Shown: positions 7,690 to 64,000 of the stretch, piece after piece | How positions within the stretch are numbered: position 1 is the first letter of the stretch | Layout: every line of letters begins with the position of its first letter | Source: Rebecca billardiae RCC1528 | Taxonomy: Eukaryota > Protista > Haptophyta | Length of the DNA stretch: 64,000 bases | Reading direction: 5' to 3' | Assembly (NCBI GenBank): GCA_965240325.2 | Contig: OZ251224.1 | Coordinates: forward strand, 806,001-870,000 | Notes under the pieces: model-generated | Told to the model about the DNA's origin: nothing | The model's input: the letters and a program-made list of their open reading frames with translations, nothing else | Databases searched by the model: none | Made by a program: the position numbers and the translations under genes

Positions 7690-10351
7690 ATGCGACCCCG
7701 CGGCATCACCGTCGTCGCGCTCGCCGCCTTGGCTGCGGCCCCGGCGACGTGCTTTGAGTTCGTCATGGGCGGCTGCGGCGGCCCTGCCTGCGCCATCCTC
7801 GACACGGGCGAGACCAAGTGCTGGGGCACTGGCACGCACGGACGGACCGGCCACGAGGACACCGAGACGCGAGGCGACGACCCCGGCGAGATGGGCAACA
7901 ACCTGCCGACGATCGACCTGGGCACGGGGCGCACGGTGAGCCAGATCTACTCGACGATGGAAGACAGCGCCTGCGCGCTCCTCGACAACGGCGACTTCAA
8001 GTGCTGGGGCAAGGGGCAATACGGCCGTCTCGGGCTCGGCGACGCCGTCAACCGAGGCGACTTGCCGGGCACGATGGGCGACAAGCTGCCGGCCATCGAG
8101 CTACCGTCGGGCACGGCCATCGTGAAGGCGGCCGTCGGTGAAGACTCTCGCTGCCTCCTTCTCGACGACACCACCACCCGGTGCTTCGGCCGAGCCAACT
8201 GGCTCGGCCTTGGCCTGGGCTCAACCGCGCAGAGCGTCGGCGATGACCCGGGCGAGATGGGCAACAACCTGATGGCCATCGACTTCGGGGCGGGGCGGTA
8301 CGCCGTGGACATATTCGCGGGCTCGGACGCGTACTGTGTCATCCTCGACAACCAGGCCCTCAAGTGCTGGGGCGACAACCCGAAAGGCAATCTCGGCTAC
8401 GACGACAAGAAGGACCGCGGCGCGGGTCCGCAGACTGGGTGCGACGACTGTCATCTCATGGGCGACAAGCTCCCGGCCGTCAACCTCGGGACCAGCGAGC
8501 TGGTGCGGACAATGGAGCTCTCTCAGCAGCACACCTGCGCGATCTTCGACAACGGCGGTCTCAAGTGTTGGGGGAGCAACTGCGCCGGCGAGCTCGGCTA
8601 CGAGGACACGCTCGATCGCGGCGACGGCGACGAGGACGCGCTGCCCAACCTGATGGGCGACAAGCTGCCGTTCGTGAATTTGGGGACGGGCAGGACGGCC
8701 GCCGCGGTGAGCCTTGCGGCGCCCAGCTGTGGCACCACGTGCGTGCTGCGCGACGACGGCTCCTACGTGTGCTGGGGCGACAACCCCTACAGCCTGGTCA
8801 TGGACGGTACGACCGTCGACTACGGCGAGGAGGCTGGGACGATGGGCGACAACCTCAAGCCCATCTACCTGGGCAGGCACCCGGACGACCCGGCCAACCG
8901 CAACCGGACGGTCTGCAAGTTCGAGATGGGCGAGGAGACGAACTGCCTGCTCCTCGACGACTGCACCTTCACGTGCATCGGCTACTGGCCGCACCTCGCC
9001 CAGGGCGACGATGAGAGCCGCGGCGACGAGCCGGGCGAGCTCGGCGACGGCCTGCTGCCCATCGACCTGGGCGACGGCGCCCTCAGCAAGTGCTTGGCGG
9101 GTACGGAGACGTGCTACCTCACGACGGCGGCAGTGCCGCCGCCCAGCCCACCGACCCCGCCCAGGCCGCCGCCCAGCCCGCCGCCCGAGCCGACGCCGCC
9201 GCCGAGCCCGCCGCCAACCCCGCCGCCAACCCCGCCGCCAAATCCACCGCCACCACCCCCGCCGCCACCCAGCCCGCCGCCCAGCCCGCCGCCCAGCCCT
9301 CCGCCGCCGCCGAGCCCACCGCCGAGCCCGCCGCCTCCGCTGGAGCCGCTGCCGCCCCCATCCCCTACGCCGCCACCGAGCCCGCCGGCGCCACCCCCGA
9401 TGCCGCCGCCCTCACCTCCGCCGTCGCCGCCGCCCTCGTCGCCACCAAGTCCGCCACCATCGCCGCCGCCAAGTCCGCCGCCATCGCCGCCGCCATCGCC
9501 GCCCCCATCGCCGCCACCGCCGCCAAGTCCGCCGCCATCGCCGCCGCCATCGCCGCCGCCATCGCCGCCGCCGCCATCGCCGCCGCCATCGCCGCCGCCA
9601 TCGCCGCCGCCATCGCCGCCGCCATCGCCGCCGCCATCGCCGCCGCCATCGCCGCCGCCATCGCCGCCGCCGAGTCCGCCGCCATCGCCACCGCCATCGC
9701 CGCCGCCAGCGCCGCCGCCGCCATCGCCGCCGCCATCGCCGCCGCCGCCAACCCCACCACCATCGCCACCGCCGCCACCATCGCCATCGCCGCCACCGCC
9801 GTCTCCACCTCCAAGCCCGCCACCCAACCCACCGCCGAGCCCACCGCCACCTCCTCCACCGCCAAGCCCACCGCCAAGCCCGCCCTCGCCGCCGCCGAGT
9901 CCACCGCCGCCCGCGCCGCCGCCAAGCCCGCCGAGCCCGACGCCGCCGCCGCCGTCGCCGCCGCCCCCTAGCCCGCCGCCGTCCCCGCCGCCGCCGCCGC
10001 CGCCGTCGCCGTCACCTCCTCCGCCGCCGCCGAGCTCGCCACCGCCACCGCGATCGCCTTCGCCGCCACCAAGCCCGCCACCACCGCCGCCACCGCCAGC
10101 TCCACCGCCGAGCCCGCCGCCGCCGCCACCACCACCGCCGTCCCCTCCGCCCTCCCCGCCACCCGCGACGCCACCCGCCCCGCCGACTCCACCGTCGAAT
10201 CCTCCATCGCCGCCAACGCCGCCGCCGAGCCCGCCGCCGCCGTCGCCGCCGCCGTCTCCCTCGCCCGAGACTGCGTCTCCACCGCCGCCCTCGCCCTCGC
10301 CGCCTCCGCCGAGCCCGCCACCGTCGTACGACGAGCCGCCCAACCCCCCGA

Positions 10352-10382
<31 letters not shown>

Positions 10383-10530
10383 ACCCACTCCACCACCAGT
10401 GCCGCCGCCAAGCCCGCCGCCGCCACCGGCGCCGCCGTCGCCGCCGCCGAGCCCGCCGCCACCGCCATCGCCGCCGACGCCGCCGCCAAGCCCGCCGCCG
10501 CCACCGACGCCGCCTTCGCCGCCACCGAGC

Positions 10531-39180: not shown

Positions 39181-39691
39181 GGCGAGCATGCCCACGACTG
39201 CTGCACCTGCATGGTGCCACCGATCGGCACGCTGCTGCGCCGCTCGACCGCGCGCATGCGACGCGCTGCTTTGGGGCCTTTGTTTGACGACGTCGTCCTC
39301 GTGACGACGGCGTCCTCCTCGTCTCACAACGACGACAACTTTATGTCGTCGCGTCAACTTCGCGGCAGCATCGCGGTCCCGGATGCGTTGGGGCTTGGGC
39401 GTATCCCGCCTGTCGCCAACCGGTACGGCACGCACCCACTTCGTCTACTGTCGTGTGCGCCTCGTTATTATATACTGAGCTATAGTCAATGCTGATCGGT
39501 CGTCGTGCAGCACGTAGCCACGGTCTCTGCTACTGCCAATCTGACGATTAGTAGCGGCGGTGACGGGTGAGGTCTGGTGAGTGGTGACGGCGTCGCCGTC
39601 GGCAGTAGGCGTAGCCTATACGAACTGCATTAGCTCGGCATAGTAGTTATAGCTATATAGCTAGCTATTATATAGCTTATAAATGTGTGTG

Positions 39692-39694
<3 letters not shown>

Positions 39695-39778
<84 letters not shown>
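39695..39778. repeat. (AT)n microsatellite in the array unit (other copies ~53269-53372 and ~61949-62000)
   Basis: Direct reading; length differs between units. Confidence 0.97.
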
Positions 39779-39781
<3 letters not shown>

Positions 39782-40478
39782 TAGCCGTCCTCGGAGCGCC
39801 TGCGCCATCCAGATGCAGTGAGGAGGCGAGGCACACGCCGGGCAGGGCGGAGCCACGCGGCGAGAGACCAGACTCTATACATTGTATGGGATTTTTGTTC
39901 CTCGAAACAAAGTGCGAGCGGCAGCCAGCGCTCGGGCCGAGCGCGCGGCAGGACTGGCCGCTCAACGCCGACAGACGCGCGGTGTGAGATGGAGCAGCTT
40001 GGACGACGCAGCTCGAGAGCCGCCAAGCCGCACGACAGCGAGGCACGAAGGACATCGCGCGCAGGGCGCCTCGAAGCTGCGGGCCGCCGGAAACAGCTGC
40101 AGCCATCAGGACAGTGGGCGCTTCCGACGGGTGCTCGCTGCGAGTGAGCGGGAGGCATGCAGGCGACGGTAACGGTTGGCTCGGCGCCTGATGAAAACCC
40201 ATTCACGAATTGGCCGTCCTGACCGCCATGCCAACCATGCCTAGTTAGCCTATGGCCCAGGAGCAGCGCAGTGAGTAGGTCGTTCTAGGCCGCCGTGCGT
40301 GCACACAGAGCACGGGCTCGAAAGTCCCTTGTGGCACGAGAAGAGGGTAGTGGCCAAGATGGCAGCCGGACTTGAGCTCGGCCGCCTGGCTCAGGGTGAA
40401 TGGCAGGCAGGTGTTGATACGGCGCATTGCGCTCCCACCGTCCTCTTAGACAATCAGTTATTGTGCCAATAACCCCAC

Positions 40479-40592
<114 letters not shown>

Positions 40593-40762: not shown

Positions 40763-40793
40763 AGCAATGCCCCCCCCTGGGGGGGGCATTGCT
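40763..40793. repeat. Perfect 15-bp-arm palindrome AGCAATG-C8-T-G8-CATTGCT (also 54339-54369 and 62933-62963)
   Basis: Direct reading. Preceded by the inverted repeat ttcccggga/tcccgggaa (40732-40762). Confidence 0.95.
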
Positions 40794-40906
40794 ACCGGAC
40801 TGGCGCGGGCCGTAATCTTAAAATGTACCTGCTTGAAATAGAGGAAGCCTATTTCAATGGGAACGCGGTTCGATTTGGCGCATGACCAATGCGGGGAACG
40901 CCCCTG

Positions 40907-41383
40907 ATGGCGGGCCGTAGGTCCGCCCCTCGGTAGTGCCCGGGGAAAAGATCAGAAAAAGAAAAGAATAAATAAAATCGCCTCGCAAAGAAAAGAAAAT
41001 CGTCTTGCTCACTACCGGGCGCCCTGTAGCTCCCACTGGGGACGCTCGGCCGAAAAAGGGGTCGGCCATGGCGCGGAGCGCATGGGCGGCGCGCGCCAAA
41101 TCCAACATCGTGAGAGGACTCCCGAGGGGGTTTTCGCCCGATTCGCGATTGCTGCCCTCGTCGTCTCGCGTGCAGGTCGAACGAGGGCCAAAGTCGACGC
41201 GTTTGGAGGTACGCTCGGCGCGTCGACACGATCGTGCGACCTGGGGCGGTCCTCGCCCGACTTGCACGTCGAGCGCTCGCACCAGCCATATCATCAAGCG
41301 CTGCGCACGATGGCCGCCTCGCGCGATGCACCGCCGCGCGTCGGGCTCGGTGCGGAAAGGCCCTCATCAGGGCGGGAAGCGCC
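40907..41383. repeat. Dispersed repeat family A, copy A1 (also 54483-54959 and 63077-63553)
   Basis: Colinear similarity to 42573-43122, from atggcgggccgtaggtccgcccc to gggcgggaagcgcc. Confidence 0.9.
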
Positions 41384-42572: not shown

Positions 42573-43122
42573 ATGGCGGGCCGTAGGTCCGCCCCTTGTT
42601 GGCGGGCCGTAGGTCCGCCCCTTGTAGTGCCCGGGGAAAAAAGATCATCAGAAAAAAGGTAAAATAATGGCGGGCCGTTAAAGAAAATCGCCTCGCAAAG
42701 AAATAACGAAAATCGCTTCCTCACTACCGGGCCGCCCTCGGCGCCTCGCAGCTCCCACTGGGGACGCTCGGCCGAAAAAGGGTTCCTGGATGGCGCGGAG
42801 CGCGTGCGCCAAATCCAACGCCGGCGCGGACATCGTGAGAGGACTCCCGAGGGGTTTTTTCGCCTGATTCGCGATTTCTGCCCTCGTCGTCTCGCGTGCA
42901 GGTCGAACGGGGGCCAAAGTCGACGCGTTTGGAGGTACGCTCGGCGCGTCGACACGATCGTGCGACCTGGGGCGGTCCTCGCCCGACTTGCACGTCGAGC
43001 GCTCGCACGGGCCATAGCATCAAGCGCTGCGCTCGACAACCACCTCGCGCGATCCACCGCCGCGCGTCGAGCTCGGTGCGGAAAGGCCCTCATCACGAGG
43101 TGTCTCGCGGGCGGGAAGCGCC
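42573..43122. repeat. Dispersed repeat family A, copy A2 (also 56149-56698); ends at the array junction
   Basis: Colinear with A1. Begins with a ~26-bp tandem duplication of tggcgggccgtaggtccgccccttg. Confidence 0.9.
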
Positions 43123-43585: not shown

Positions 43586-46500
43586 ATGCTCTCGCTCCTC
43601 CTCGCGCTCGCCGTCGCGGCGGGCAAGGACAACCTCAACGGCCAGGCCGAGGTGACCGAGTACATCGTGAGCTTTGGCAAGGGCAAGCCCGGCGGCGGCT
43701 CGTCGACGGCCGTCGCCACCGCTCTGAGCGCGCTGCCCGCCGGCTCTGCGAGCGTCAAGCACGAGTTCTCGAACGTGATCGAGGGCTTCAGCGGCACGCT
43801 CACCAAGGAGGCCAAGGCGATGCTCGAGAAGATGGGCGCGACGATCGAGGAGGACCTGCCCGTGTACGCCCTCGCCAACGACGACCAGGACGAGCGGCAG
43901 CAGGGCAAGGGCAAGTACAGCGTCGGCATCCTCGAGGCGCTGCCGTGGGGCCTCGACCGCATCGACCAGACCAACCTGCCGCTCGACGGCTCGTTCGAGA
44001 CGCCCGGCCTGGGCGAGGACGCGCACGTCTTTGTGGTGGATACGGGTATCAACCTGGGCCACAACGAGTGGACTGGTCGCATCGGCGACGGCTACGACTT
44101 CATCGACAACGACGACGACCCGACGGACTGCGGCGGTGGGTTGCGCTCGAGCTGCACGCGCATGCACGCTCGCGCCCGCACCGCGGCGGCACGCACTGAC
44201 CATCCCCGCCTCCCGCGTGCCCTACCCGCGCGCGAACGCAGGCCACGGCACGCACTGCGCGGGCACCGTGCTCGGCACGCACTACGGTGTGGCGAAGGGC
44301 GCGACGCTGCACGGCGTGCGCGTGCTCGGCTGCTCCGGCTCCGGCTCGACCTCGGGAATCATCGCCGCGCTCGAGTGGGTGGCGGAGCGCGAGGAGTCCA
44401 TCAAGATCGTGTCGATGTCGCTCGGCGGCGGCTTCTCCAGCACCTTCAACGACGCCGTCAACAACCTCGTCAACGCGGGCGTGACCACCGTCGTCGCGGC
44501 GGGCAACGACAACGACGACGCATGCACCACGAGCCCGGCGTCCGCGCCGCTGGCGATCACCGTCGGCTCGACGACGAGCAGCGACGCGCGCTCCGGCTTC
44601 TCGAACTACGGCAGCTGCGTGGACATCTACGCGCCAGGCAGCAGCATCCTCAGCGCGTGGATCGGCGGCCCCGACGCGACCAACACCATCTCGGGCACCT
44701 CTATGGCTTGTCCGCACGTGGCCGGCGTCGTCGCGCAGTGGGCGAGTGCGCTCGGGGCCTCCGCGACGCCGGCGCAGCTGCTCAGCTTCATCCTCGCCGA
44801 AGCCGTTCCCGACATCGTCACGGGGGTGCCCGCGCCGGAGGAGCCAAAGCTGCTCCAGGCGTACACGATGGCGCCGCCAAGCCCGCCGCCCGCGCCGCCT
44901 TCGCCGCCGCCCTCGCCACCGCCGCCCTCGCTGCCACCCTCGCCGCCCTCGCCTCCGAGCCCCCCACCGCTGCCGCCCTCGCCGCCGAGCCCGCCGCCGA
45001 GCCCGGCGTGCATCAGCGGCCACATCCGCTGCGGCACGCCGCGTACTGGCACGACGGCCGGCGCTCCAAACAACTGGGGCAACCCGTCGGGCGAGGTCTT
45101 CTTCGGGATCGACGGCTGGGGCTCGGCGCTGCGCCTCGACACGTGCGGCTCGAGCTACGACACGTACCTGCGCGTGTACGACAAGTGCCCCGACGAGGGC
45201 GGCGTGCAGCTCGCGGCGAACGACGACGGCAGCTGCGGGTTCGCCTCGCTCATCACGCTCGACGTGCCGCTCGACAGCGGGTACGTGGTGATGGTCGAGG
45301 GCTACTCGAGCAGCGAGGGCGCGTACACGCTCGCGATGACGGGCTGCGACAACCCGAGCCTGCCGCTGCCGCCGTCTCTGCCGCCGAACCCGCCGACGTC
45401 GCTTACGTCGCCGCCGGCCCCTCCGCCAAGCCCGCCGCCACCGTCGCCGCCCTCGCCACCGCCTGCTCCGCCGCGCCCGCCGTGCACCGTCGGCACGATC
45501 ACGTGCGCAGCTCCCGCCACCGGCTCGACCGCCGGCGCGCCGAACAACTGGGGCAACCCGTCGGGCGAGCACCTGTACGCGATCAGCGGGCACGGCACGC
45601 TGCGCCTCGACACGTGCGGCTCGAGCTACGACACGTACCTGCGCGTGTACGACAAGTGCCCCGACGAGGGCGGCGTGCAGCTCGCGGCGAACGACGACGG
45701 CAGCTGCGGTCTCGCCTCGCTCATCACGCTCGACGTGCCGCTCGACAGCGGGTACGTGGTGATGGTCGAGGGCTACTCGAGCAGCGAGGGCGCGTACACG
45801 CTTGCGATGACGGGCTGCGAGGTGCCGAGCCCGTCGCCCTCGCCGGGCCCCCTGCCGACACCCCCGCCGACACCCCCGCCGAGCCCCTCGCCGACGCCCT
45901 CGCCGATGCCCTCGCCCAGCCCCCCGCCCAGCCCGCCACCGCCCTCCTCGCCTCCGCCACTTTCGCCCTCGCCGCCCCCCTCACCACCGCCGCCGCCGCC
46001 CGAGCCGTGCGCCGTTGGCCGGCTCGCGTGCGCCACGCCCGCCATCGGCTCCACAATCGGCCTGCCCAGTGTCTGGGGCGCGCCGAGCGGCGACGCGCTG
46101 TACCGGCTGTCGTTCGGCGAGGCCGGCGGCACGGCGAGGCTCACGGCCTGTGGCAGCGACTTTGACACGGTCCTGCGCGTGCTCGACGGCTGCCCGGGCG
46201 CGCCTCACGGCGCCACGGAGCTCGCGGTCAACGACGACAGCGGCGAGTGCGGCGACGCTTCCGCGCTCACGGTCGACGTGCCGCCCGGCGGCTCTGTGAT
46301 TGTGCTGGTGGAGGGCTTCGTGACGAAGGAGGGGCAGTACAAGCTGACGGTGGAGGGCTGCCCCGATGAGGACGAGGGCAGGATCGCGCCGCCCTCGCCG
46401 CCGCCCTCGCCCTCGCCACCGCCCGCGCCGTGTGTCCCTGCGGGCGCGCTGCCGCTCAGCTGCGGCACGACTGTGCGCGGCGACACACGCGACGGCTCTG

Positions 46501-47858
46501 GGGACGCCAACTTTGGCAACCCGGCGCGCGAGCACTACTACACGATCAGCGCGCCCACCGCGACGACCGTCACCCTCGACACGTGCGGCTCCGAGTACGA
46601 CACCTTCCTCCGCGTGTACGACGGCTGCCCGCGCGACGCGGACGCGCAGATCGGCAGCGACGACGACAGCGGCTGCGGCGTGATGGCGCGGCTCTCGCTC
46701 GAGCTCGAGGGCGGCGTGGAGTACCTGGTGCTGCTCGAGGGCTTCGGGGCGAACCAGGGGCCGTACTCGCTCGAGATGAGCTGCGACGGCGGCGGCGAGT
46801 CATCCGTGCCCGACGATAACGGCGGCGGCGACGAGCTGCCGGGTGTCGAGCCCCCCACCGACGCGGCGCGCATCCACTGCTCACTCGGGCTCGAGGCTGA
46901 CCTCGCAGACTGGGCTGACGGCGCGGCGGGTGCAGCAGACAAGCGCGCGGCGCTCGGCGCTTCGATCGCGCAGGTGGCCGAGGTCCCGACGTCGGACGTC
47001 CTCATCACGAGCGTGGTCGGCGGGAGCGTCACTGTCCACTTCGAGGTGGTGCGCGCGGACGAGGACGAGCAGATCGACAAGGTGATCGAGAACTTGGAGA
47101 CACGCGCCGCCCAGCTCGCGGCGAGCGTCGAGGCGAGCACGGGCTCAAGCGTGACCTCCGGCGTGGTCGTGCAGGAGGTGGTCCACCCGCTCCAGCCGAC
47201 GCCGACGCCGACGCCGGCCAGCGGTGACGAGGCGGTGGGCGTTGTTGTCGACGGTGTCAAGGCGAATGACGACGGGGCCGGTGCGGACGGCGGCGACGAC
47301 GACGACGACGACGACAACGACGACGACGACCTGGGTTCGCAGGCGCGCGTCGGCGGCGCGGCCGGAGCCGCCGACACGGCGACGGGCGGCGGCGTCGGCG
47401 GCTCGTCGCTCAGCCTCGCCGCGCTCATCGGCATTGTCACCGGCGCCGTCGGCGCGCTAGTGGTCGCGCTGTGCGCGTACGCCGGCTGGAAGCGCTGGAA
47501 GTACGACTCGAAGCTGACCCACTCCGCCCGCGCCGTGTCCTACCAGGCCGCCGGAGACCAGGCGCTGCCGACGGCGGACGAGTCGGCTCCGAGCGCGGCG
47601 AGGCCTGCCGCTGAGTTCCAAGAGTTCCATGCCGTCGCGCTCAACGCAGCGCCCCAGCCGTCGACGAGCGCCGCGGGGCGGTGGACGACGGTCGTGGCTA
47701 CTGCTTCGTCCTGGTTCTCCCCAAGCTCGAGCCAGACGGCAGCACCGGCACGCGAGAGCGTGGCGGACGTCGACGAGCTTGGCCCTCCGCGTCGTGCGTC
47801 GCGCACGATGGCGGCGCGCCCGCCGGCCCCTGGCGCCGGCTCGGCAAACATGGCCTAA
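43586..47858 (+). CDS. Membrane-anchored subtilisin, copy 2; intron 44136-44241
   Basis: Same structure as copy 1; reading frame and catalytic triad intact. Confidence 0.93.
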
Positions 47859-48345: not shown

Positions 48346-51300
48346 CCATTCAGGCGGGCATTGCCGGGTTGCACCCGGCAATGCTGCATTCACCCCGGTC
48401 CTACCGGAATGCAGGGCTCGCCCCGCTGGCCTACAGCTCTGTGACCAGTCAGCGCCGCGCGCCACATAACAGGCCACCACGACTTCATCAATACTGCTGC
48501 ACGCATGATGGTACCAGTAGTGACAGAGTACTGGCGGTACCGTGCTGCGCGCATGGTATGGTACTGCTGCGTGCATGATGGTATGGTACTGCTGCGCGCA
48601 TGGTATGGTACTGCTGTGCGCATGGTAGTATGGTACTCTGCTGCACGCATGATCAGGTATGTACTGCTGCTGCGCGCATGGTATGGTACTGCCGCGTGCA
48701 TGGTATGGTACTGCTGCACGCATGATGGTATGGTACTGGCGGTACTGCTGCGCGCATGGTATGGCACTGCTGTGCGCATGGTATGGCGGTACTGCTGCGT
48801 GCATGGTATGCCGTACTGCAGTGCACGCAAGAAACAAGCGCGCAGGTGGTGGGAGAAGCAAGCAGAAGCAAGCGCGCAGGTGGTGGGAGTGCTCGCAGGT
48901 GGTGGGAGAAGCAAGAAGCAGCAGCTCGAAGCAGCAGGCACTCCGATGCGGCACCTCCCGAAGCTGCTGCATCCTTCTGACCGCCCGCGGTTTGCGGACG
49001 AAGCGTCCGCGACTGCGAGCCGCACGCGCACGCGGTGCGCGCAGCGGTCATGGCGCTGGGTCCGGCGAGCAGCCGGGGTGAGGTTCAGGTACGAGGGGCA
49101 CACACTATTCCGCATGCGCCTTGGCACCGACCACGCGCCGCATCCACTGGGAGATCTGCGGCCGCAAGAAGCGCGCGCCTTGGCGAGGGCGAAGCATCGT
49201 AGACCCGCCTGCGCGCAGTGCTTCCGCACCGCCGGCCGGGGCGGTCCGGCACTTTAACTTTGCTTGGTGTTTGTCCGGCTTCCTCAGCATCATGACATCA
49301 TCACAGTCCTCACTCCTTCACCGATCACTGTGCACCGATCTCTTGAAGGGAGCGAGCAACGGAGGACGAAGCTGAAGCACCTAGTCATGGGTCCTTGCTC
49401 TCTTGCCGAACCGTGAGGAACCGGAAGCAACCGAGAGGAAGCTGAAAGCAGTGTAAAGCACCTTCACTGGTCCTTGCTCTCTCCAGCTTCTGTTGACCGG
49501 TTTCCAAGCAACCGGGAGGAACCGAAGCATACGGGGAGGCCAAGGGTGGTCAGGGTCGCCGACTCCAGCGGAGTCCGGCGCCGGAACTTCAGCACCGATT
49601 TTTTGCGGCGGCGCGGCGTGCGGGGCCGCTGCCGCTGTGGCGGGCCGCTCGGGGCGTGCACGGCGTGGGCTCGTGCGGCCGCTGCCGCGCACGCCGAGCG
49701 ATCCGGCGCGGGCTCGCGGCTTGTCGATGGCCTCGCGCGCCGCAGCGCGGCGCGCGCCTTGCCTAGCTTCGCCTGTCTCGCGCCTTGGCCGCCGTGCACG
49801 CGTGCGCCGCCAAACCGCAAGCTCGGCATAGCTCTCAGCCGAGCGTGCACGTGCCTTGCGCGACGCGACGCGGGCATTGCCAGCGGGCGATGTAGCCGTA
49901 GTGCGAGCCGACCACGCGCCGCATCCACTGGGAGATCCGCGGCCGCAAGGAGCGCGCGCCTTTGGCGAGGGCGCCCGCGATCCCGCATCCCGGCCCGGGG
50001 CGGTCCGGCACTGCTTGTTTGGTGTTGTCCGGCTTCCTCAGCTCATTCATCACTCCAGCTCATCATCACTGCGCACCGATCTCATGAAGGGAGCGAGCAA
50101 CCGGAGGAGGCTGAAGCACCTTCGTGGCAAGGCGGTCCTTGCTCTCTTGCCGAACCGTGAGGAACCGGAAGCAACCGAGAGGAAGCTGAAAGCAGTGTGA
50201 AGCACCTTCACTGGTCCTTGCTCTCTCCAGCTTCATGTTGACCGGTTTCCAAGCTAAACCGGGAGGAACCGGTTGGAAGCATACGGGGAGGCTCGCTTAT
50301 TAGTCGCTTTCGCCTTTCATGATTCATCGGCTTCCGTGTGTTCATCATCACCAGCTGTTCATCATCGGTTCAGAACTTGATCAGTTGGTGCCCAGTACAT
50401 GTAAGCGGTACTGCCATGATTCATCATCGGCTTCCGTGTGTCATCAGCAAGCTGTTCATCCAAAGATGGTCCTTTTGGTTCGCCCTGCTGGCCTACAGCT
50501 CTGTGACCAGTCAGCGCCGCGCGCCACATAACAGGCTGTAAACAGGCCACCACGACTTCATCAATACTGCTGCACGCATGATGGTACCAGTAGTGACAGA
50601 GTACTGGCGGTACCGTGCTGCGCGCATGGTATGGTACTGCTGGGCTCGTGGTATGGCACTCACATGGTCGCATGGTATGGTACTGAGTGCACGCATTCAT
50701 GATTGGTACTGTAACTGGTACTGCTGCGCGCATGGTAGTATGCGGTACTGCTGAGCGCATGGTATGGTACTGCTGCATGCATGTAGTACGCATGATGGCC
50801 GTAATGGTATGGTACTGCTGCTCGCATGGTATGCAGTACTGCTGCGCGCATGGTATGGTGGGTACTGCTGCGCGCACTGTAGCTAGTGAGTAGTGTGGAG
50901 TACTGATGCGTGACGCATGGTATGGTACTGCATGGTCTATGTTATGGCCTACTGCTGCGCGCATGGTATGGTACTGCTGCGTGCATGATGGTATGGTACT
51001 GCTGCGCGCATGGTATGGTACTGCTGTGCGCATGGTAGTATGGTACTCTGCTGCACGCATGATCAGGTATGTACTGCTGCTGCGCGCATGGTATGGTACT
51101 GCCGCGTGCATGGTATGGTACTGCTGCACGCATGATGGTATGGTACTGGCGGTACTGCTGCGCGCATGGTATGGCACTGCTGTGCGCATGGTATGGCGGT
51201 ACTGCTGCGTGCATGGTATGCCGTACTGCAGTGCACGCAAGAAACAAGCGCGCAGGTGGTGGGAGAAGCAAGCAGAAGCAAGCGCGCAGGTGGTGGGAGT

Positions 51301-53241
51301 GCTCGCAGGTGGTGGGAGAAGCAAGAAGCAGCAGCTCGAAGCAGCAGGCACTCCGATGCGGCACCTCCCGAAGCTGCTGCATCCTTCTGACCGCCCGCGG
51401 TTTGCGGACGAAGCGTCCGCGACTGCGAGCCGCACGCGCACGCGGTGCGCGCAGCGGTCATGGCGCTGGGTCCGGCGAGCAGCCGGGGTGAGGTTCAGGT
51501 ACGAGGGGCACACACTATTCCGCATGCGCCTTGGCACCGACCACGCGCCGCATCCACTGGGAGATCTGCGGCCGCAAGAAGCGCGCGCCTTGGCGAGGGC
51601 GAAGCATCGTAGACCCGCCTGCGCGCAGTGCTTCCGCACCGCCGGCGGGGCGGTCCGGCACTTTAACTTTGCTTGGTGTTTGTCCGGCTTCCTCAGCATC
51701 ATGACATCATCACAGTCCTCACTCCTTCACCGATCACTGTGCACCGATCTCTTGAAGCCTGAAGGGAGCGAGCAACGGAGGACGAAGCTGAAGCACCTAG
51801 TCATGGGTCCTTGCTCTCTTGCCGAACCGTGAGGAACCGGAAGCAACCGAGAGGAAGCTGAAAGCAGTGTAAAGCACCTTCACTGGTCCTTGCTCTCTCC
51901 AGCTTCATGTTGACCGGTTTCCAAGCAACCGGGAGGAACCGAAGCATACGGGGAGGCCAAGGGTGGTCAGGGTCGCCGACTCCAGCGGAGTCCGGCGCCG
52001 GAACTTCAGCACCGATTTTTTGCGGCGGCGCGGCGTGCGGGGCCGCTGCCGCTGTGGCGGGCCGCTCGGGGCGTGCACGGCGTGGGCTCGTGCGGCCGCT
52101 GCCGCGCACGCCGAGCGATCCGGCGCGGGCTCGCGGCTTGTCGATGGCCTCGCGCGCCGCAGCGCGGCGCGCGCCTTGCCTAGCTTCGCCTGTCTCGCGC
52201 CTTGGCCGCCGTGCACGCGTGCGCCGCCAAACCGCAAGCTCGGCATAGCTCTCAGCCGAGCGTGCACGTGCCTTGCGCGACGCGACGCGGGCATTGCCAG
52301 CGGGCGATGTAGCCGTAGTGCGAGCCGACCACGCGCCGCATCCACTGGGAGATCCGCGGCCGCAAGGAGCGCGCGCCTTTGGCGAGGGCGCCCGCGATCC
52401 CGCATCCCGGCCCGGGGCGGTCCGGCACTGCTTGTTTGGTGTTGTCCGGCTTCCTCAGCTCATTCATCACTCCAGCTCATCATCACTGCGCACCGATCTC
52501 ATGAAGGGAGCGAGCAACCGGAGGAGGCTGAAGCACCTTCGTGGCAAGGCGGTCCTTGCTCTCTTGCCGAACCGTGAGGAACCGGAAGCAACCGAGAGGA
52601 AGCTGAAAGCAGTGTGAAGCACCTTCACTGGTCCTTGCTCTCTCCAGCTTCATGTTGACCGGTTTCCAAGCTAAACCGGGAGGAACCGGTTGGAAGCATA
52701 CGGGGAGGCTCGCTTATTAGTCGCTTTCGCCTTTCATGATTCATCGGCTTCCGTGTGTTCATCATCACCAGCTGTTCATCATCGGTTCAGAACTTGATCA
52801 GTTGGTGCCCAGTACATGTAAGCGGTACTGCCATGATTCATCATCGGCTTCCGTGTGTCATCAGCAAGCTGTTCATCCAAAGATGGTCCTTTTGGTTCAT
52901 CATCGGTTCAGAACTTGATCAGTTTGTGCCCAGTACACATGTAAGCGGTACCGCACCAAGGCAGCCCCTGACCGTACAGTAGCTACTCCATCCCTTGAAT
53001 CATCATCATCATCACATTTCTTGCTGTTACCGCGGACGTAGCTGGGGGAGTCGACTGCTGACAGATTGCACGAAAAAACCGTTGGCCCCAATTGGGATCT
53101 GACTAAACTGTATTCCTCGGGATACCTATTGGAAGGCCATCAACTTTGTAAGAATCACCGGACTTCGCGTGTCCTACCGGAAAACTCGCTCCGCTCGCAT
53201 GCTTGTTCTTACAGAACAACCAATGCGAGCGGGGCTCGCGA
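48346..53241 (-). mobile_element. Non-autonomous Helitron-like insertion, 4,896 bp
   Basis: Absent from units 1 and 3, whose empty site reads gctagcta|ttatatagc (39667/39668 and 61921/61922). No TSD. The minus strand starts TC and ends hairpin (48358-48384) + 12 nt ...ATGG. Confidence 0.8.
48491..48822. repeat. ~21-24 bp minisatellite (gcgcatggtatggtactgct-like) inside the insertion; an expanded second copy lies at ~50563-51232
   Basis: Direct reading. Confidence 0.92.
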
Positions 53242-53265
53242 TTATATAGCTTATAAATGTGTGTG

Positions 53266-53375
<110 letters not shown>

Positions 53376-54069
53376 TAGCCGTCCTCGGAGCGCCTGCGCC
53401 ATCCAGATGCAGTGAGGAGGCGAGGCACACGCCGGGCAGGGCGGAGCCACGCGGCGAGAGACCAGACTCTATACATTGTATGGGATTTTTGTTCCTCGAA
53501 ACAAAGTGCGAGCGGCAGCCAGCGCTCGGGCCGAGCGCGCGGCAGGACTGGCCGCTCAACGCCGACAGACGCGCGGTGTGAGATGGAGCAGCTTGGACGA
53601 CGCAGCTCGAGAGCCGCCAAGCCGCACGACAGCGAGGCACGAAGGACATCGCGCGCAGGGCGCCTCGAAGCTGCGGGCCGCCGGAAACAGCTGCAGCCAT
53701 CAGGACAGTGGGCGCTTCCGACGGGTGCTCGCTGCGAGTGAGCGGGAGGCATGCAGGCGACGGTAACGGTTGGCTCGGCGCCTGATGAAAACCCATTCAC
53801 GAATTGGCCGTCCTGACCGCCATGCCAACCATGCCTAGTTAGCCTATGGCCCAGGAGCAGCGCAGTGAGTAGGTCGTTCTAGGCCGCCGTGCGTGCACAC
53901 AGAGCACGGGCTCGAAAGTCCCTTGTGGCACGAGAAGAGGGTAGTGGCCAAGATGGCAGCCGGACTTGAGCTCGGCCGCCTGGCTCAGGGTGAATGGCAG
54001 GCAGGTGTTGATACGGCGCATTGCGCTCCCACCGTCCTCTTAGACAATCAGTTATTGTGCCAATAACCC

Positions 54070-54154
<85 letters not shown>

Positions 54155-57100
54155 ATATATATGTATATGATGCGCATGATGCGCATTGATTAATGCATAG
54201 CTAATAGATGCTGTACATGCATGACTGCTGACGATCATCGTCGTCTCGACGACGTCGATCGATCTGCTTCGAAAAATAAATAATCGAAAATGCTCGCGGC
54301 AAGGGCGTTCCCGGGATCCTGCCACACGCTCCCGGGAAAGCAATGCCCCCCCCTGGGGGGGGCATTGCTACCGGACTGGCGCGGGCCGTAATCTTAAAAT
54401 GTACCTGCTTGAAATAGAGGAAGCCTATTTCAATGGGAACGCGGTTCGATTTGGCGCATGACCAATGCGGGGAACGCCCCTGATGGCGGGCCGTAGGTCC
54501 GCCCCTCGGTAGTGCCCGGGGAAAAGATCAGAAAAAGAAAAGAATAAATAAAATCGCCTCGCAAAGAAAAGAAAATCGTCTTGCTCACTACCGGGCGCCC
54601 TGTAGCTCCCACTGGGGACGCTCGGCCGAAAAAGGGGTCGGCCATGGCGCGGAGCGCATGGGCGGCGCGCGCCAAATCCAACATCGTGAGAGGACTCCCG
54701 AGGGGGTTTTCGCCCGATTCGCGATTGCTGCCCTCGTCGTCTCGCGTGCAGGTCGAACGAGGGCCAAAGTCGACGCGTTTGGAGGTACGCTCGGCGCGTC
54801 GACACGATCGTGCGACCTGGGGCGGTCCTCGCCCGACTTGCACGTCGAGCGCTCGCACCAGCCATATCATCAAGCGCTGCGCACGATGGCCGCCTCGCGC
54901 GATGCACCGCCGCGCGTCGGGCTCGGTGCGGAAAGGCCCTCATCAGGGCGGGAAGCGCCATCGCGCGCGAGGCAAGATTTGGCGCGGCCTTCTGAACACG
55001 ATCGCCGGAAATCCGCGCGCACCGGACTCAGTCCTCGCTCGCGGTCCGGTCCCTCAGCCGACAAGCCCACGTCCGGCCTGCATGGCGTCGACGGTGACCA
55101 ATGCGACGGAAGCGCAACGCCAACGGCGTACGACGCGCAGCGGACGCACCTCCCGGGTCTGTCGCCGTGGCAGCAACCGTGTCTTCGCGAGTTGGCGACC
55201 CTCGTCGCAGCGCGACACAGACAAGCCCGTGATGATGCCATCCGCAGAGAGATGAAACGTCGAGCATGCAAAATCGCCGCGCCATCCTCGTCCATGGCGC
55301 AGGCGCTGCGGGACGAGGCGGAAGTCGTCACGCCGGTGACGGATGCGCTGCGATTCGTGTGCCCGCGTGAGCAGCGCTTGCCCACTCTCGATCGCGAGTG
55401 GCACACGCTGTCGCTGTGCGCGCGCGCGCGCACAACCAACAGCTCCTCGTGCCGCCGAGCACGCGAGCGCCAGACCTGTCGAAGAGGCGAAGAGCGACGA
55501 CCGCGTGAACGTCAACGCGCTCGTGCTCAGCGTGGCGGCCGTGTACGACGTCAACGCGACCTGCGCCGAGCCCATCATGCCTGGAGCGGACATCGGCAAG
55601 CATCCTCGCGACGACCGCTCTCGGCTGGCGGCAGGAGGACATGCACATGATCTACTCTGGCGGCTTCGTCGGCGGCGAGGCGCTCGATTACGCCATCGCG
55701 GTCGACATGCGGCACATACAGCGCCTACCCGCGCTCGCGCGGAGCAACGGGCTACCCGCTCCGCCCCGCGTGCTGCACATTCCCTCGTGGGTGTGGGCCT
55801 CGCTGATGGAGTGATGCGCATACTACTAAGAGTACACGGACCGTGAGACGTGTGCACACGTCGGAGAGCCAACTTCACGTGTCACTGGTCCTTGCACTCG
55901 ACTGTCCGTCACCCACGGCCACGAGCGAATGTGGAAAGCAGACGCGAACCCGCAAAGGATACATTGCGACAGCACTGGCACGGCCCGCCGACCCCCCCGC
56001 CCGTCAGGGCACAGTTTTAATAATAATATGCTGATGATCAGGGGCGCTTCCAGTTCCGCGGTTCCGCCCGGCTTCGCCAGGACTCGGTGAAGCCTACTAC
56101 GACTGTGTCACTGTGAGGACACTCGCGTGCGAATCGCGATGCGACGAAATGGCGGGCCGTAGGTCCGCCCCTTGTTGGCGGGCCGTAGGTCCGCCCCTTG
56201 TAGTGCCCGGGGAAAAAAGATCATCAGAAAAAAGGTAAAATAATGGCGGGCCGTTAAAGAAAATCGCCTCGCAAAGAAATAACGAAAATCGCTTCCTCAC
56301 TACCGGGCCGCCCTCGGCGCCTCGCAGCTCCCACTGGGGACGCTCGGCCGAAAAAGGGTTCCTGGATGGCGCGGAGCGCGTGCGCCAAATCCAACGCCGG
56401 CGCGGACATCGTGAGAGGACTCCCGAGGGTTTTTTTCGCCTGATTCGCGATTTCTGCCCTCGTCGTCTCGCGTGCAGGTCGAACGGGGGCCAAAGTCGAC
56501 GCGTTTGGAGGTACGCTCGGCGCGTCGACACGATCGTGCGACCTGGGGCGGTCCTCGCCCGACTTGCACGTCGAGCGCTCGCACGGGCCATAGCATCAAG
56601 CGCTGCGCTCGACAACCACCTCGCGCGATCCACCGCCGCGCGTCGAGCTCGGTGCGGAAAGGCCCTCATCACGAGGTGTCTCGCGGGCGGGAAGCGCCTC
56701 GTGCGCTCGGCGTCCGACCTCGCGCAACGCATGTCGGGCGGCGCAAACGACGACGAGGCCTCAGGCGATGGCGGTGACATCATGGTGCGCTTCCCCGCGC
56801 TCGTCTGACCACATCGTGGCGACGCGCAGGCGACCTACGGCGTGCGGCTGCGCACGCACCGTCACACAATCCTGATCATCGTCACGTCGTCGAGCGCCGC
56901 CATCTGCGCATCTCCACGGCCGACCATTCGCTGGAAGCCTGGCAGGCTGGCACCAAGATCTATTCTTAGATCTGGTCCATCCTCCGGATGAAGATCGACC
57001 GACCAGGCGACCACTCCGACTCTGAACTCCGGCCTGGCAAGAAAAGTTCCACCTTCAATCTCGCGGACTTGTCGGATCAAACGGACGTTCCCGACGCAAG

Positions 57101-61434: not shown

Positions 61435-61945
61435 GGCGAGCATGCCCACGACTGCTGCACCTGCATGGTGCCACCGATCGGCACGCTGCTGCGCCGCTCG
61501 ACCGCGCGCATGCGACGCGCTGCTTTGGGGCCTTTGTTTGACGACGTCGTCCTCGTGACGACGGCGTCCTCCTCGTCTCACAACGACGACAACTTTATGT
61601 CGTCGCGTCAACTTCGCGGCAGCATCGCGGTCCCGGATGCGTTGGGGCTTGGGCGTATCCCGCCTGTCGCCAACCGGTACGGCACGCACCCACTTCGTCT
61701 ACTGTCGTGTGCGCCTCGTTATTATATACTGAGCTATAGTCAATGCTGATCGGTCGTCGTGCAGCACGTAGCCACGGTCTCTGCTACTGCCAATCTGACG
61801 ATTAGTAGCGGCGGTGACGGGTGAGGTCTGGTGAGTGGTGACGGCGTCGCCGTCGGCAGTAGGCGTAGCCTATACGAACTGCATTAGCTCGGCATAGTAG
61901 TTATAGCTATATAGCTAGCTATTATATAGCTTATAAATGTGTGTG

Positions 61946-62003
<58 letters not shown>

Positions 62004-62697
62004 TAGCCGTCCTCGGAGCGCCTGCGCCATCCAGATGCAGTGAGGAGGCGAGGCACACGCCGGGCAGGGCGGAGCCACGCGGCGAGAGACCAGACTCTAT
62101 ACATTGTATGGGATTTTTGTTCCTCGAAACAAAGTGCGAGCGGCAGCCAGCGCTCGGGCCGAGCGCGCGGCAGGACTGGCCGCTCAACGCCGACAGACGC
62201 GCGGTGTGAGATGGAGCAGCTTGGACGACGCAGCTCGAGAGCCGCCAAGCCGCACGACAGCGAGGCACGAAGGACATCGCGCGCAGGGCGCCTCGAAGCT
62301 GCGGGCCGCCGGAAACAGCTGCAGCCATCAGGACAGTGGGCGCTTCCGACGGGTGCTCGCTGCGAGTGAGCGGGAGGCATGCAGGCGACGGTAACGGTTG
62401 GCTCGGCGCCTGATGAAAACCCATTCACGAATTGGCCGTCCTGACCGCCATGCCAACCATGCCTAGTTAGCCTATGGCCCAGGAGCAGCGCAGTGAGTAG
62501 GTCGTTCTAGGCCGCCGTGCGTGCACACAGAGCACGGGCTCGAAAGTCCCTTGTGGCACGAGAAGAGGGTAGTGGCCAAGATGGCAGCCGGACTTGAGCT
62601 CGGCCGCCTGGCTCAGGGTGAATGGCAGGCAGGTGTTGATACGGCGCATTGCGCTCCCACCGTCCTCTTAGACAATCAGTTATTGTGCCAATAACCC

Positions 62698-62733
<36 letters not shown>

Positions 62734-64000
62734 CATATACATATATATATGTATATGTATATGATGCGCATGATGCGCATTGATTAATGCATAGCTAATA
62801 GATGCTGTACATGCATGACTGCTGACGATCATCGTCGTCTCGACGACGTCGATCGATCTGCTTCGAAAAATAAATAATCGAAAATGCTCGCGGCAAGGGC
62901 GTTCCCGGGATCCTGCCACACGCTCCCGGGAAAGCAATGCCCCCCCCTGGGGGGGGCATTGCTACCGGACTGGCGCGGGCCGTAATCTTAAAATGTACCT
63001 GCTTGAAATAGAGGAAGCCTATTTCAATGGGAACGCGGTTCGATTTGGCGCATGACCAATGCGGGGAACGCCCCTGATGGCGGGCCGTAGGTCCGCCCCT
63101 CGGTAGTGCCCGGGGAAAAGATCAGAAAAAGAAAAGAATAAATAAAATCGCCTCGCAAAGAAAAGAAAATCGTCTTGCTCACTACCGGGCGCCCTGTAGC
63201 TCCCACTGGGGACGCTCGGCCGAAAAAGGGGTCGGCCATGGCGCGGAGCGCATGGGCGGCGCGCGCCAAATCCAACATCGTGAGAGGACTCCCGAGGGGG
63301 TTTTCGCCCGATTCGCGATTGCTGCCCTCGTCGTCTCGCGTGCAGGTCGAACGAGGGCCAAAGTCGACGCGTTTGGAGGTACGCTCGGCGCGTCGACACG
63401 ATCGTGCGACCTGGGGCGGTCCTCGCCCGACTTGCACGTCGAGCGCTCGCACCAGCCATATCATCAAGCGCTGCGCACGATGGCCGCCTCGCGCGATGCA
63501 CCGCCGCGCGTCGGGCTCGGTGCGGAAAGGCCCTCATCAGGGCGGGAAGCGCCATCGCGCGCGAGGCAAGATTTGGCGCGGCCTTCTGAACACGATCGCC
63601 GGAAATCCGCGCGCACCGGACTCAGTCCTCGCTCGCGGTCCGGTCCCTCAGCCGACAAGCCCACGTCCGGCCTGCATGGCGTCGACGGTGACCAATGCGA
63701 CGGAAGCGCAACGCCAACGGCGTACGACGCGCAGCGGACGCACCTCCCGGGTCTGTCGCCGTGGCAGCAACCGTGTCTTCGCGAGTTGGCGACCCTCGTC
63801 GCAGCGCGACACAGACAAGCCCGTGATGATGCCATCCGCAGAGAGATGAAACGTCGAGCATGCAAAATCGCCGCGCCATCCTCGTCCATGGCGCAGGCGC
63901 TGCGGGACGAGGCGGAAGTCGTCACGCCGGTGACGGATGCGCTGCGATTCGTGTGCCCGCGTGAGCAGCGCTTGCCCACTCTCGATCGCGAGTGGCACAC

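Follow-up and report, generated by a model that had tools for sequence, protein, structure and literature searches.

What is the 4.9-kb segment that lengthens one unit of a tandem array in this haptophyte alga, and how did it enter the array? The host has a GC-rich genome. In the 64-kb window, which is the whole stretch of DNA analysed here, megablast showed that the array spans from 34441 to the window end (34441-64000, plus strand). Three units of 8,681 bp were delimited from direct-repeat families, the third running past the window end. Their start-to-start spacings were 8678 and 13576, unit 2 being longer by 4.9 kb. A subtilase (S8) gene is present in each unit, and that of unit 2 lies at 43586-47858 on the plus strand. 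The insertion point is 487 bp beyond the stop of this gene, in an AT-rich spacer adjoining a (TA)n tract, which is found near the right side of the insert (53269-53372).

The boundaries were determined from the sites that lack the segment. For a 21-mer that bridges the empty site, the window contains exactly two copies, in unit 1 (39656-39676) and unit 3 (61910-61930), both on the plus strand, against 0 expected by chance. When the two empty sites were aligned with both unit-2 junctions, the alignment was base-perfect up to the break, and the array picked up at exactly the next base. These results confirm two claims of the first-pass annotation, namely that unit 2 carries a precise insertion of 4,896 bp (48346-53241) whose site is intact in units 1 and 3, and that target bases were neither duplicated nor lost. 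In the orientation proposed here the element is on the minus strand, with its 5' end at 53241 and its 3' end at 48346.

Since the left flank and the insert both end in A, the junction is ambiguous by one base, and this locus is equally compatible with two registers. In the A|T register the element reads TC...GG, with a 3' terminus of ...GAATGG. In the T|A register it reads CG...GGT, the 3' terminus is ...AATGGT, and the site on the element's strand is TAAT|A. CTRR is not present in either register, and the site is not T|T. The A|T target and the 5'-TC start reported earlier thus hold in the first register, and in the second, equally valid one they are replaced by T|A and CG.

The insertion is younger than the last array duplication, as had been proposed, with units 2 and 3 differing by 5 substitutions in 7,217 bp. 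Judged by sequence divergence, it is very young, because the array units differ by only 0.07-0.25%.

We next describe the two ends, with their hairpins read on the minus strand. The element begins TCGCGAGCC. Its 5' terminus (53223-53241) consists of TCGCGA followed by GCCCCGCTCGCAT; sequence, fold and inverted match point to a terminal (sub)TIR arm here, which is also the outer arm of a 5' hairpin. This hairpin (53188-53235) has stems of 13 bp and 7 bp and begins 6 nt from the end. Its DNA fold gave a z of -4.6 to -5.0, and its stability exceeds that of all 141 GC-matched 70-nt windows of the 64-kb window. The strong fold of the 5' end had been overlooked in the first-pass annotation. At the 3' end, the perfect 12-bp stem with a 3-nt loop that had been placed 12 nt from an ATGG terminus was recovered by stem search and folding at 48358-48384. 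A second hairpin with stems of 7 bp and 5 bp was found by folding at 48385-48413, and the 12-nt tail (48346-48357) reads CCGCCTGAATGG, without CTRR. The 3'-end 70-mer ranked in the top 0.24% of GC-matched windows for fold stability, and the fold z of both ends against shuffles was -3.4 to -5.0. Perfect stems of at least 10 bp with loops of 3-8 nt are represented by four distinct sequences only in the 64 kb.

The ends are also related to each other in sequence. The 5' terminal arm has an inverted match at 48415-48431, a stretch 71-87 nt short of the 3' end that lies upstream of the 3' hairpins; counted from nt 7 the identities are 10/11, and counted from nt 3 they are 13/17 (empirical P 0.01-0.06). 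This inverted relation is short and imperfect, and it was non-significant in a plain 160-nt shuffle test. A subterminal direct-repeat module was found as well. Its right copy (53171-53195) consists of GTCCTACCGGAA, a short gap and CTCGCTCCGCT, and its left copy (48398-48431) of GTCCTACCGGAA, 7 nt and CTCGCCCCGCTGGCC, the second half of the left copy doubling as the stretch with which the 5' terminal arm has its inverted match. The module score of 25 equals the maximum among 300 shuffles, and the exact 12-nt part lies 53-60 nt inside both ends. True terminal inverted repeats were looked for at the element ends and none were found; the exact termini, when compared, were unrelated, with no short direct repeats at them.

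The interior of the insert is a tandem dimer of two ~2.1-2.4-kb halves, together with a 22-25-bp minisatellite; the dimer had been overlooked in the earlier annotation. Half A (48415-50476, 2,062 bp) contains the minisatellite at 48553-48805 and a ~745-bp sub-repeat, and half B (50477-52893, 2,417 bp) contains the minisatellite at 50626-51215. Aligned over 1,939 bp, the halves show 0 substitutions and are set apart by 3 indels, and their junction shows GGTTC microhomology. A greater-than-unit rolling-circle concatemer was considered as the origin of the dimer and rejected, neither terminus being found at the A/B junction, which has plain GGTTC microhomology. The motif GGCAATGCCCGC was likewise considered as an internal 3' end and rejected, since it recurs within each half but without a hairpin. 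The insert is non-coding. It had no match in Pfam or Rfam, and inspection of ORFs and Pfam agreed with the earlier statement that it contains no Rep/Hel ORF. Elsewhere in the 64-kb window, no RepHel was found.

We then compared this layout with known transposons. The published descriptions of HINE/Helentron and Helitron2 elements place the subTIR at 2-4 nt from the 5' terminus and at 38-60 nt from the 3' one, with a palindrome 8-35 nt from the 3' end, and they include a 5' hairpin, no TSD, and central tandem repeats making up as much as half of the length (PMC3627910; PMC4067079; PMC11417382). Terminal repeats in the Helitron2 group are 8-16 nt long and asymmetric or subterminal inverted, the 5' copy lying 0-4 nt from the 5' end, with the 3' copy upstream of the 3' hairpin. 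The group's target is usually T|T, with TTTT|Y and TNAT|A as variants. On its minus strand the insert has a 5'-T, a 5' hairpin, a putative subterminal inverted repeat, a 3' palindrome and central tandem repeats. As in the Helitron2/Helentron-HINE group, hairpins stand at both ends and the 5' one involves the 5' repeat. Against this assignment, the 3' partner at 71-87 nt lies beyond the published ranges and the target is not the group's usual T|T; non-T|T targets are already on record, as TNAT|A in Fusarium (PMC5148889) and as A|T in the Phytophthora proto-Helentron (PMC4067079). Also weighing against it are the short, imperfect inverted relation of the ends, the lack of any second copy or RepHel in the searches described here, and the shallow coverage of the one read run with the element, which leaves out the left junction and the flank.

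The closest parallels differ in which features they share. Helitron2 non-autonomous elements such as Helitron-1N1_CRe of Chlamydomonas (Bao and Jurka 2013, PMC3627910) likewise have hairpins at both ends, a 5'-T, no TSD and no coding content, and in this type too the 5' terminal arm builds the 5' hairpin and has its inverted partner upstream of the 3' hairpin. In those elements, however, the partner is 20-30 nt from the 3' end, whereas here it is 71-87 nt away with two hairpins between; the inverted match here is imperfect, and in place of TTTT|Y the element has A|T or T|A as its target. In the Helentron-derived HINE/DINE-1 elements (Thomas et al. 2014, PMC4067079), the subTIR stands a few nt inside the 5' terminus and tens of nt inside the 3' terminus, as the putative subTIR does here. 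A palindrome 8-35 nt from the 3' end is likewise shared, as are microsatellite or tandem repeats in the centre, which may take up half of such an element. Unlike them, our element has no T-run boundaries or T|T target, is much larger (4.9 kb) and resides in a non-animal host. FoHeli1 and FoHeli2 of Fusarium oxysporum, which are Helitron2-type (PMC5148889), start with TC, have asymmetric terminal inverted repeats and use TNAT|A sites in which a T likewise leaves the position ambiguous by one base, comparable to TAAT|A here in the T|A register. In that register, however, our element starts with CG, and the FoHeli host is a fungus; the likeness considered here is one of features.

Taken together, these comparisons suggest that the insert, oriented on the minus strand, is probably a Helitron-like rolling-circle transposon that is non-autonomous and whose ends are arranged as in the Helitron2/Helentron-HINE group rather than as in Helitron1. 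The earlier call of a Helitron-like rolling-circle element is still the best reading of a precise, TSD-less, non-coding insertion with hairpin-bearing ends. It looks like an ordinary Helitron2-type non-autonomous element and not a new kind of element; we infer its family membership and the existence of other copies. The ATGG 3' end had been interpreted as a variant end specificity, a judgement made by canonical Helitron1 rules. It is no anomaly, because CTRR is not expected in the Helitron2/Helentron-HINE group.

The mechanism we propose starts with a nick at the 5' end, made by a RepHel transposase whose gene would lie at another place in the genome and which would be directed by the 5' terminal arm and its hairpin. 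One strand would be peeled off 5' to 3' as far as the 3' end; the stop may be marked there by the two hairpins together with the subterminal partner of the 5' arm. The strand would then be joined into a single-stranded target in the AT-rich spacer, at A|T or T|A, without target duplication.

Other readings were weighed against the same evidence. It is possible, if unlikely, that the element belongs to a Helitron-like lineage of haptophytes in which an A|T target of Helitron1 type and a 12-nt hairpin-to-end spacing go together with Helitron2-type ends (5' hairpin and subterminal inverted repeat), or that these ends are served by non-Helitron HUH Reps. There is a precedent for mixed features in the Phytophthora proto-Helentron, which has an HLE2-type protein and an A|T target; unlike the element here, it ends in CTAG, is 14-kb long and is autonomous (PMC4067079; PMC11417382). 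If this is true, the Helitron/Helentron intermediate that has been inferred from Phytophthora would have, in the mixed-feature lineage, a counterpart that is alive and active at present.

We consider it quite unlikely that the insert is a canonical Helitron1-type non-autonomous Helitron whose RepHel tolerates ATGG in place of CTRR. The lack of a TSD, the 12-nt distance between the 3' hairpin and the end (~11-12 nt in Helitron1) and the A|T target with a TC start in one register would agree with it. The latter two hallmarks are gone in the other register, however, and the element has no CTRR. Helitron1 elements are described as hairpin-free at the 5' end and devoid of terminal inverted repeats, their single hairpin lying 10-12 nt from the 3' end (PMC3627910; PMC11417382; PMC4067079). 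The strong 5' hairpin and the inverted and direct relations between the end modules are foreign to them (PMC3627910).

An origin without transposition, either by capture of repetitive DNA in double-strand-break repair or as an assembly artefact in a difficult tandem array, is improbable. It draws on the single copy seen, the richness of the insert in tandem repeats and the 1-bp junction overlap (A), which could be microhomology. Both blastn with the insert and a mismatch-tolerant search with its two termini recovered the insert alone in the 64-kb window. The 27-mer of the 3' hairpin was absent from metagenome contigs, and viral contigs and prokaryote genomes gave no match to the element. Ten exact look-ups of translated pseudo-ORFs found none on record, and a protein search by word index gave no match for the 279-aa ORF adjoining the 3' end. 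A gapped pattern of the end module matched six contigs, all with one bacterial gene, and these hits were set aside as chance. Among public reads, one run contains the element; it is shallow, and none of its contigs crosses the left junction or covers the flank. In this run a contig stops one base beyond the 5' terminus (53242), and diverged versions of the element's interior parts are present at ~3x the depth of the unique parts. The depth and the contig end fit, weakly, with several copies, in favour of the Helitron2-type reading. Capture or artefact is disfavoured because the array resumes at the exact next base with no loss and no filler, exceptionally stable hairpins lie 6-12 nt from both breaks, and sequence modules are common to both ends, which would be unexpected for random capture or a chimeric join.

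That another HUH endonuclease mobilised the non-autonomous element, either a Y1 Rep of Replitron type or a CRESS-type Rep, appears very unlikely. Replitrons are found in haptophytes; short direct repeats lie at their termini or close to them, the right end carries a hairpin, and most families make no TSD (PMC10288648). The element here has a 12-nt direct repeat near both ends. Replitron-N1 in particular (Craig 2023, PMC10288648), which is HUH-mobilised, is also non-autonomous, with end-associated direct repeats and a right-end hairpin. However, Replitron repeats are at the termini, and Replitron-1 gives variable TSDs and fuzzy right ends (PMC10288648), whereas the repeat here is 53-60 nt inside unrelated exact termini. 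Neither a CRESS-type nonanucleotide nor a ATTACCAGGTGG-like end was present when searched for in the element. The Helitron2-type arrangement of subTIR and 5' hairpin accounts for the direct repeat equally well.

A non-autonomous tyrosine-recombinase element (Crypton- or DIRS/Ngaro-like) would share the lack of a TSD and the internal direct repeats but is extremely unlikely. The repeats here have the form of a simple tandem duplication with microhomology rather than of split terminal repeats, and the A/B junction contains no second copy of either terminus. No short direct repeats lie at the exact termini, and hairpin-bearing ends are not known to be a feature of these groups.

Returning to the Helitron2-type reading, a filled site beside exact empty sites is the cleanest definition of rolling-circle transposon ends, and both termini of a putative haptophyte family are fixed here in this way. 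Almost nothing on Helitrons in haptophytes was found in the searchable literature. Divergence of 0.07% between array units and 0 substitutions between the element halves argues that the mobilising enzyme may be active now. The genome would thus be a practical place to study Helitron2-type transposition and AT-rich-island preference in a very GC-rich genome. The known transposition mechanism is left unchanged by the finding. In favour of the Helitron2-type reading, the spacer of the insertion also houses an older ~700-bp Helitron2-like element, which splits a (TA)n tract.

The tandem array carrying the element, in which each unit holds one subtilase gene, spans 34441 to the end of the window; the unit is 8,681 bp, and unit 2 has a length of 13,576 bp. 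A 21-mer spanning the empty site occurred exactly twice in the window, at 39656-39676 and 61910-61930. Aligning both empty sites against the pair of unit 2 junctions gave a perfect match as far as the break. These results confirmed the first-pass annotation, which had used the two empty sites to define a precise insertion of 4,896 bp (48346-53241) with no target bases duplicated or lost. Since the left flank and the insert share a terminal A, the break can be read either as A|T, giving an element TC...GG, or as T|A, giving CG...GGT. The A|T target and 5'-TC start proposed previously therefore hold in only one of two equally valid registers; the T|A register gives a CG start. The (TA)n tract adjoining the site (39695-39778, 53269-53372, and 61949 onward) varied in length among the three units, and these differences were the largest inter-unit indels. 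Unit 1 differed from units 2 and 3 by ~0.25% substitutions, and 5 substitutions separated unit 2 from unit 3 over 7,217 bp (0.07%). Because the insert is confined to unit 2, the simplest history is that insertion postdates the youngest array duplication, in agreement with the earlier proposal that it followed formation of a young array. Two independent base-perfect excisions would be less parsimonious. The insertion is real, very recent, and cleanly bounded.

Both ends of the element were folded. The end sequences reported previously were all correct, including the perfect 12-bp stem at 48358-48384 and the 12-nt minus-strand tail ending in ATGG, and the fold of this 3' end was in the top 0.24% of GC-matched 70-nt windows from the 64-kb window. 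We also found a 5' hairpin of 13+7 bp at 53188-53235, the outer arm of which is formed on the minus strand by bases starting at nt 7 from the 5' terminus. The 5' end fold was more stable than 141/141 GC-matched 70-nt windows from the same sequence. A module composed of GTCCTACCGGAA, a short gap, and CTCGCyCCGCT was present as one copy near each end in direct orientation (48398-48427 and 53171-53195), with no further occurrence in the window. Within the 5' hairpin, the right copy supplies the inner arm. A short, imperfect inverted match (10/11 or 13/17) linked the 5' terminal arm to the left-end copy, with an empirical P of 0.01-0.06 and no significance in a plain 160-nt shuffle test. No true terminal inverted repeats were found in the element.

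Canonical Helitrons (HLE1) begin with 5'-TC, finish in 3'-CTRR with a single hairpin 10-12 nt from that terminus, and insert at A|T (PMC11417382, PMC5148889, PMC4067079). Helitron2 elements prefer a 5'-T and carry a hairpin at each end; of their asymmetric terminal inverted repeats, the terminal 5' copy produces the 5' hairpin and the other copy lies immediately upstream of the 3' hairpin (PMC3627910). In Helentron-derived HINEs, the distance of the subterminal inverted repeats (subTIRs) to the terminus is 2-4 nt on the 5' side and 38-60 nt on the 3' side, a palindrome is located 8-35 nt from the 3' terminus, and central tandem repeats often make up as much as half of the element (PMC4067079). 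In the minus-strand reading, all of these structural Helitron2/HINE traits were seen in our element, somewhat stretched and with the imperfect inverted match as a candidate subTIR, whereas it lacks the CTRR end of HLE1. Therefore, the 3' end regarded as non-canonical in the first-pass annotation is normal for a Helitron2-type element, and the suggested variant end specificity is not needed. The T|T target of the Helitron2/Helentron group was not matched. Targets vary among members of the group: Chlamydomonas elements use TTTT|Y (PMC3627910), Fusarium elements use TNAT|A with the identical one-base ambiguity (PMC5148889), and a Phytophthora proto-Helentron uses A|T (PMC4067079). The architecture of the element matches that of Helitron2/Helentron-type non-autonomous elements; we infer its family membership and partner enzyme.

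Mobilisation by another HUH endonuclease, a Replitron-type Y1 Rep or a CRESS-type Rep, has little probability. Replitrons are known from haptophytes and have direct repeats at or near the termini and a right-end hairpin (PMC10288648), but the direct repeat of our element sits 53-60 nt in from each end and can be accounted for equally well by the subTIR and hairpin arrangement, and CRESS-type origins are absent from the element. Repair capture or an assembly artefact is unlikely, because the array continues at the next base after the insert and both breaks carry exceptional hairpins and shared modules. A tyrosine-recombinase element is not supported, since the repeats inside the insert do not correspond to split terminal repeats.

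The element is non-coding and non-autonomous. A Pfam search of the insert gave sub-threshold or repeat-driven matches only, and an Rfam search gave nothing except artefacts from the adjacent TA tract. None of ten insert ORFs was present in the protein collection, and a protein search found no homologue of the 279-aa ORF adjoining the 3' end. The insert ORFs are frame-blind products of repetitive, GC-rich DNA. As noted previously, no Rep/Hel ORF lies inside the insert, and no Rep or helicase gene was found across the whole window, where GC is 0.56-0.80 in 2-kb bins and ordinary eukaryotic genes (anoctamin, RCC1-like, ANAPC2/cullin, citrate synthase, SET domain, and subtilase) account for the remaining long ORFs. 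A 1,604-aa ORF with RCC1-like and LRR domains contains a long stretch of 9-12-nt periodicity with 103 overlapping repeat copies (~9129-10400). The interior of the insert is a tandem dimer of half A (48415-50476) and half B (50477-52893), which are identical across 1,939 bp save three indels and differ in a 22-25-bp minisatellite. A ~745-bp sub-repeat (81% identity) is present in each half. The A/B junction shares GGTTC microhomology with the end of half B, and neither site contains a terminus of the element, indicating a plain tandem duplication. A head-to-tail element pair or rolling-circle concatemer was thus ruled out.

No second copy of the element was found elsewhere in the window, and searching metagenome, viral, and prokaryote contigs by pattern gave no hits or chance matches only. 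The single public run found to contain the element had 56% of the words sampled from it. A 374-nt contig from this run stopped at 53242, one base past the 5' terminus, whereas a contig reaching ~30 nt into the flank is expected for a single-copy insertion here. Another contig tracked 51967-52325 with 9 differences and then diverged, and a diverged version of 48864-49273 had 17x depth compared with ~5x in unique parts. These contigs fit several related element copies, which we count as weak evidence since the run is shallow, leaves the left junction and flank uncovered, and has C where the window has T at 53145. The difference at 53145 and the deeper diverged version may represent either another strain or other family copies.

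In every array unit, a ~700-bp GC-rich segment ~110 bp right of the insertion site splits the (TA)n tract (39778-40479 in unit 1, about 53372-54073, and about 62000-62701). It starts with TGTCTAG at its 5' end and terminates in a 7-bp hairpin (loop TGC) followed by CCCACA. The hairpin is preceded, at a distance of 4 nt, by TTAGACA, the inverse of the segment's 5' end. This segment probably represents a small Helitron2-like element that predates the array. Each unit also has a perfect 14-bp palindrome, AGCAATGCCCCCCC, with loop CTG (40763-40793, 54339-54369, and 62933-62963). It lies within a strongly folding stretch of ~100 nt (z -5.5), and 11/13 positions of its arm agree with the 4.9-kb element's 3' hairpin arm and tail. 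In addition, a pair of 470-508-bp direct repeats, ~85% alike and ~1.7 kb apart, was found at 40899-41369 and 42590-43095 and at the equivalent places in units 2 and 3, and could represent the ends of an older element.
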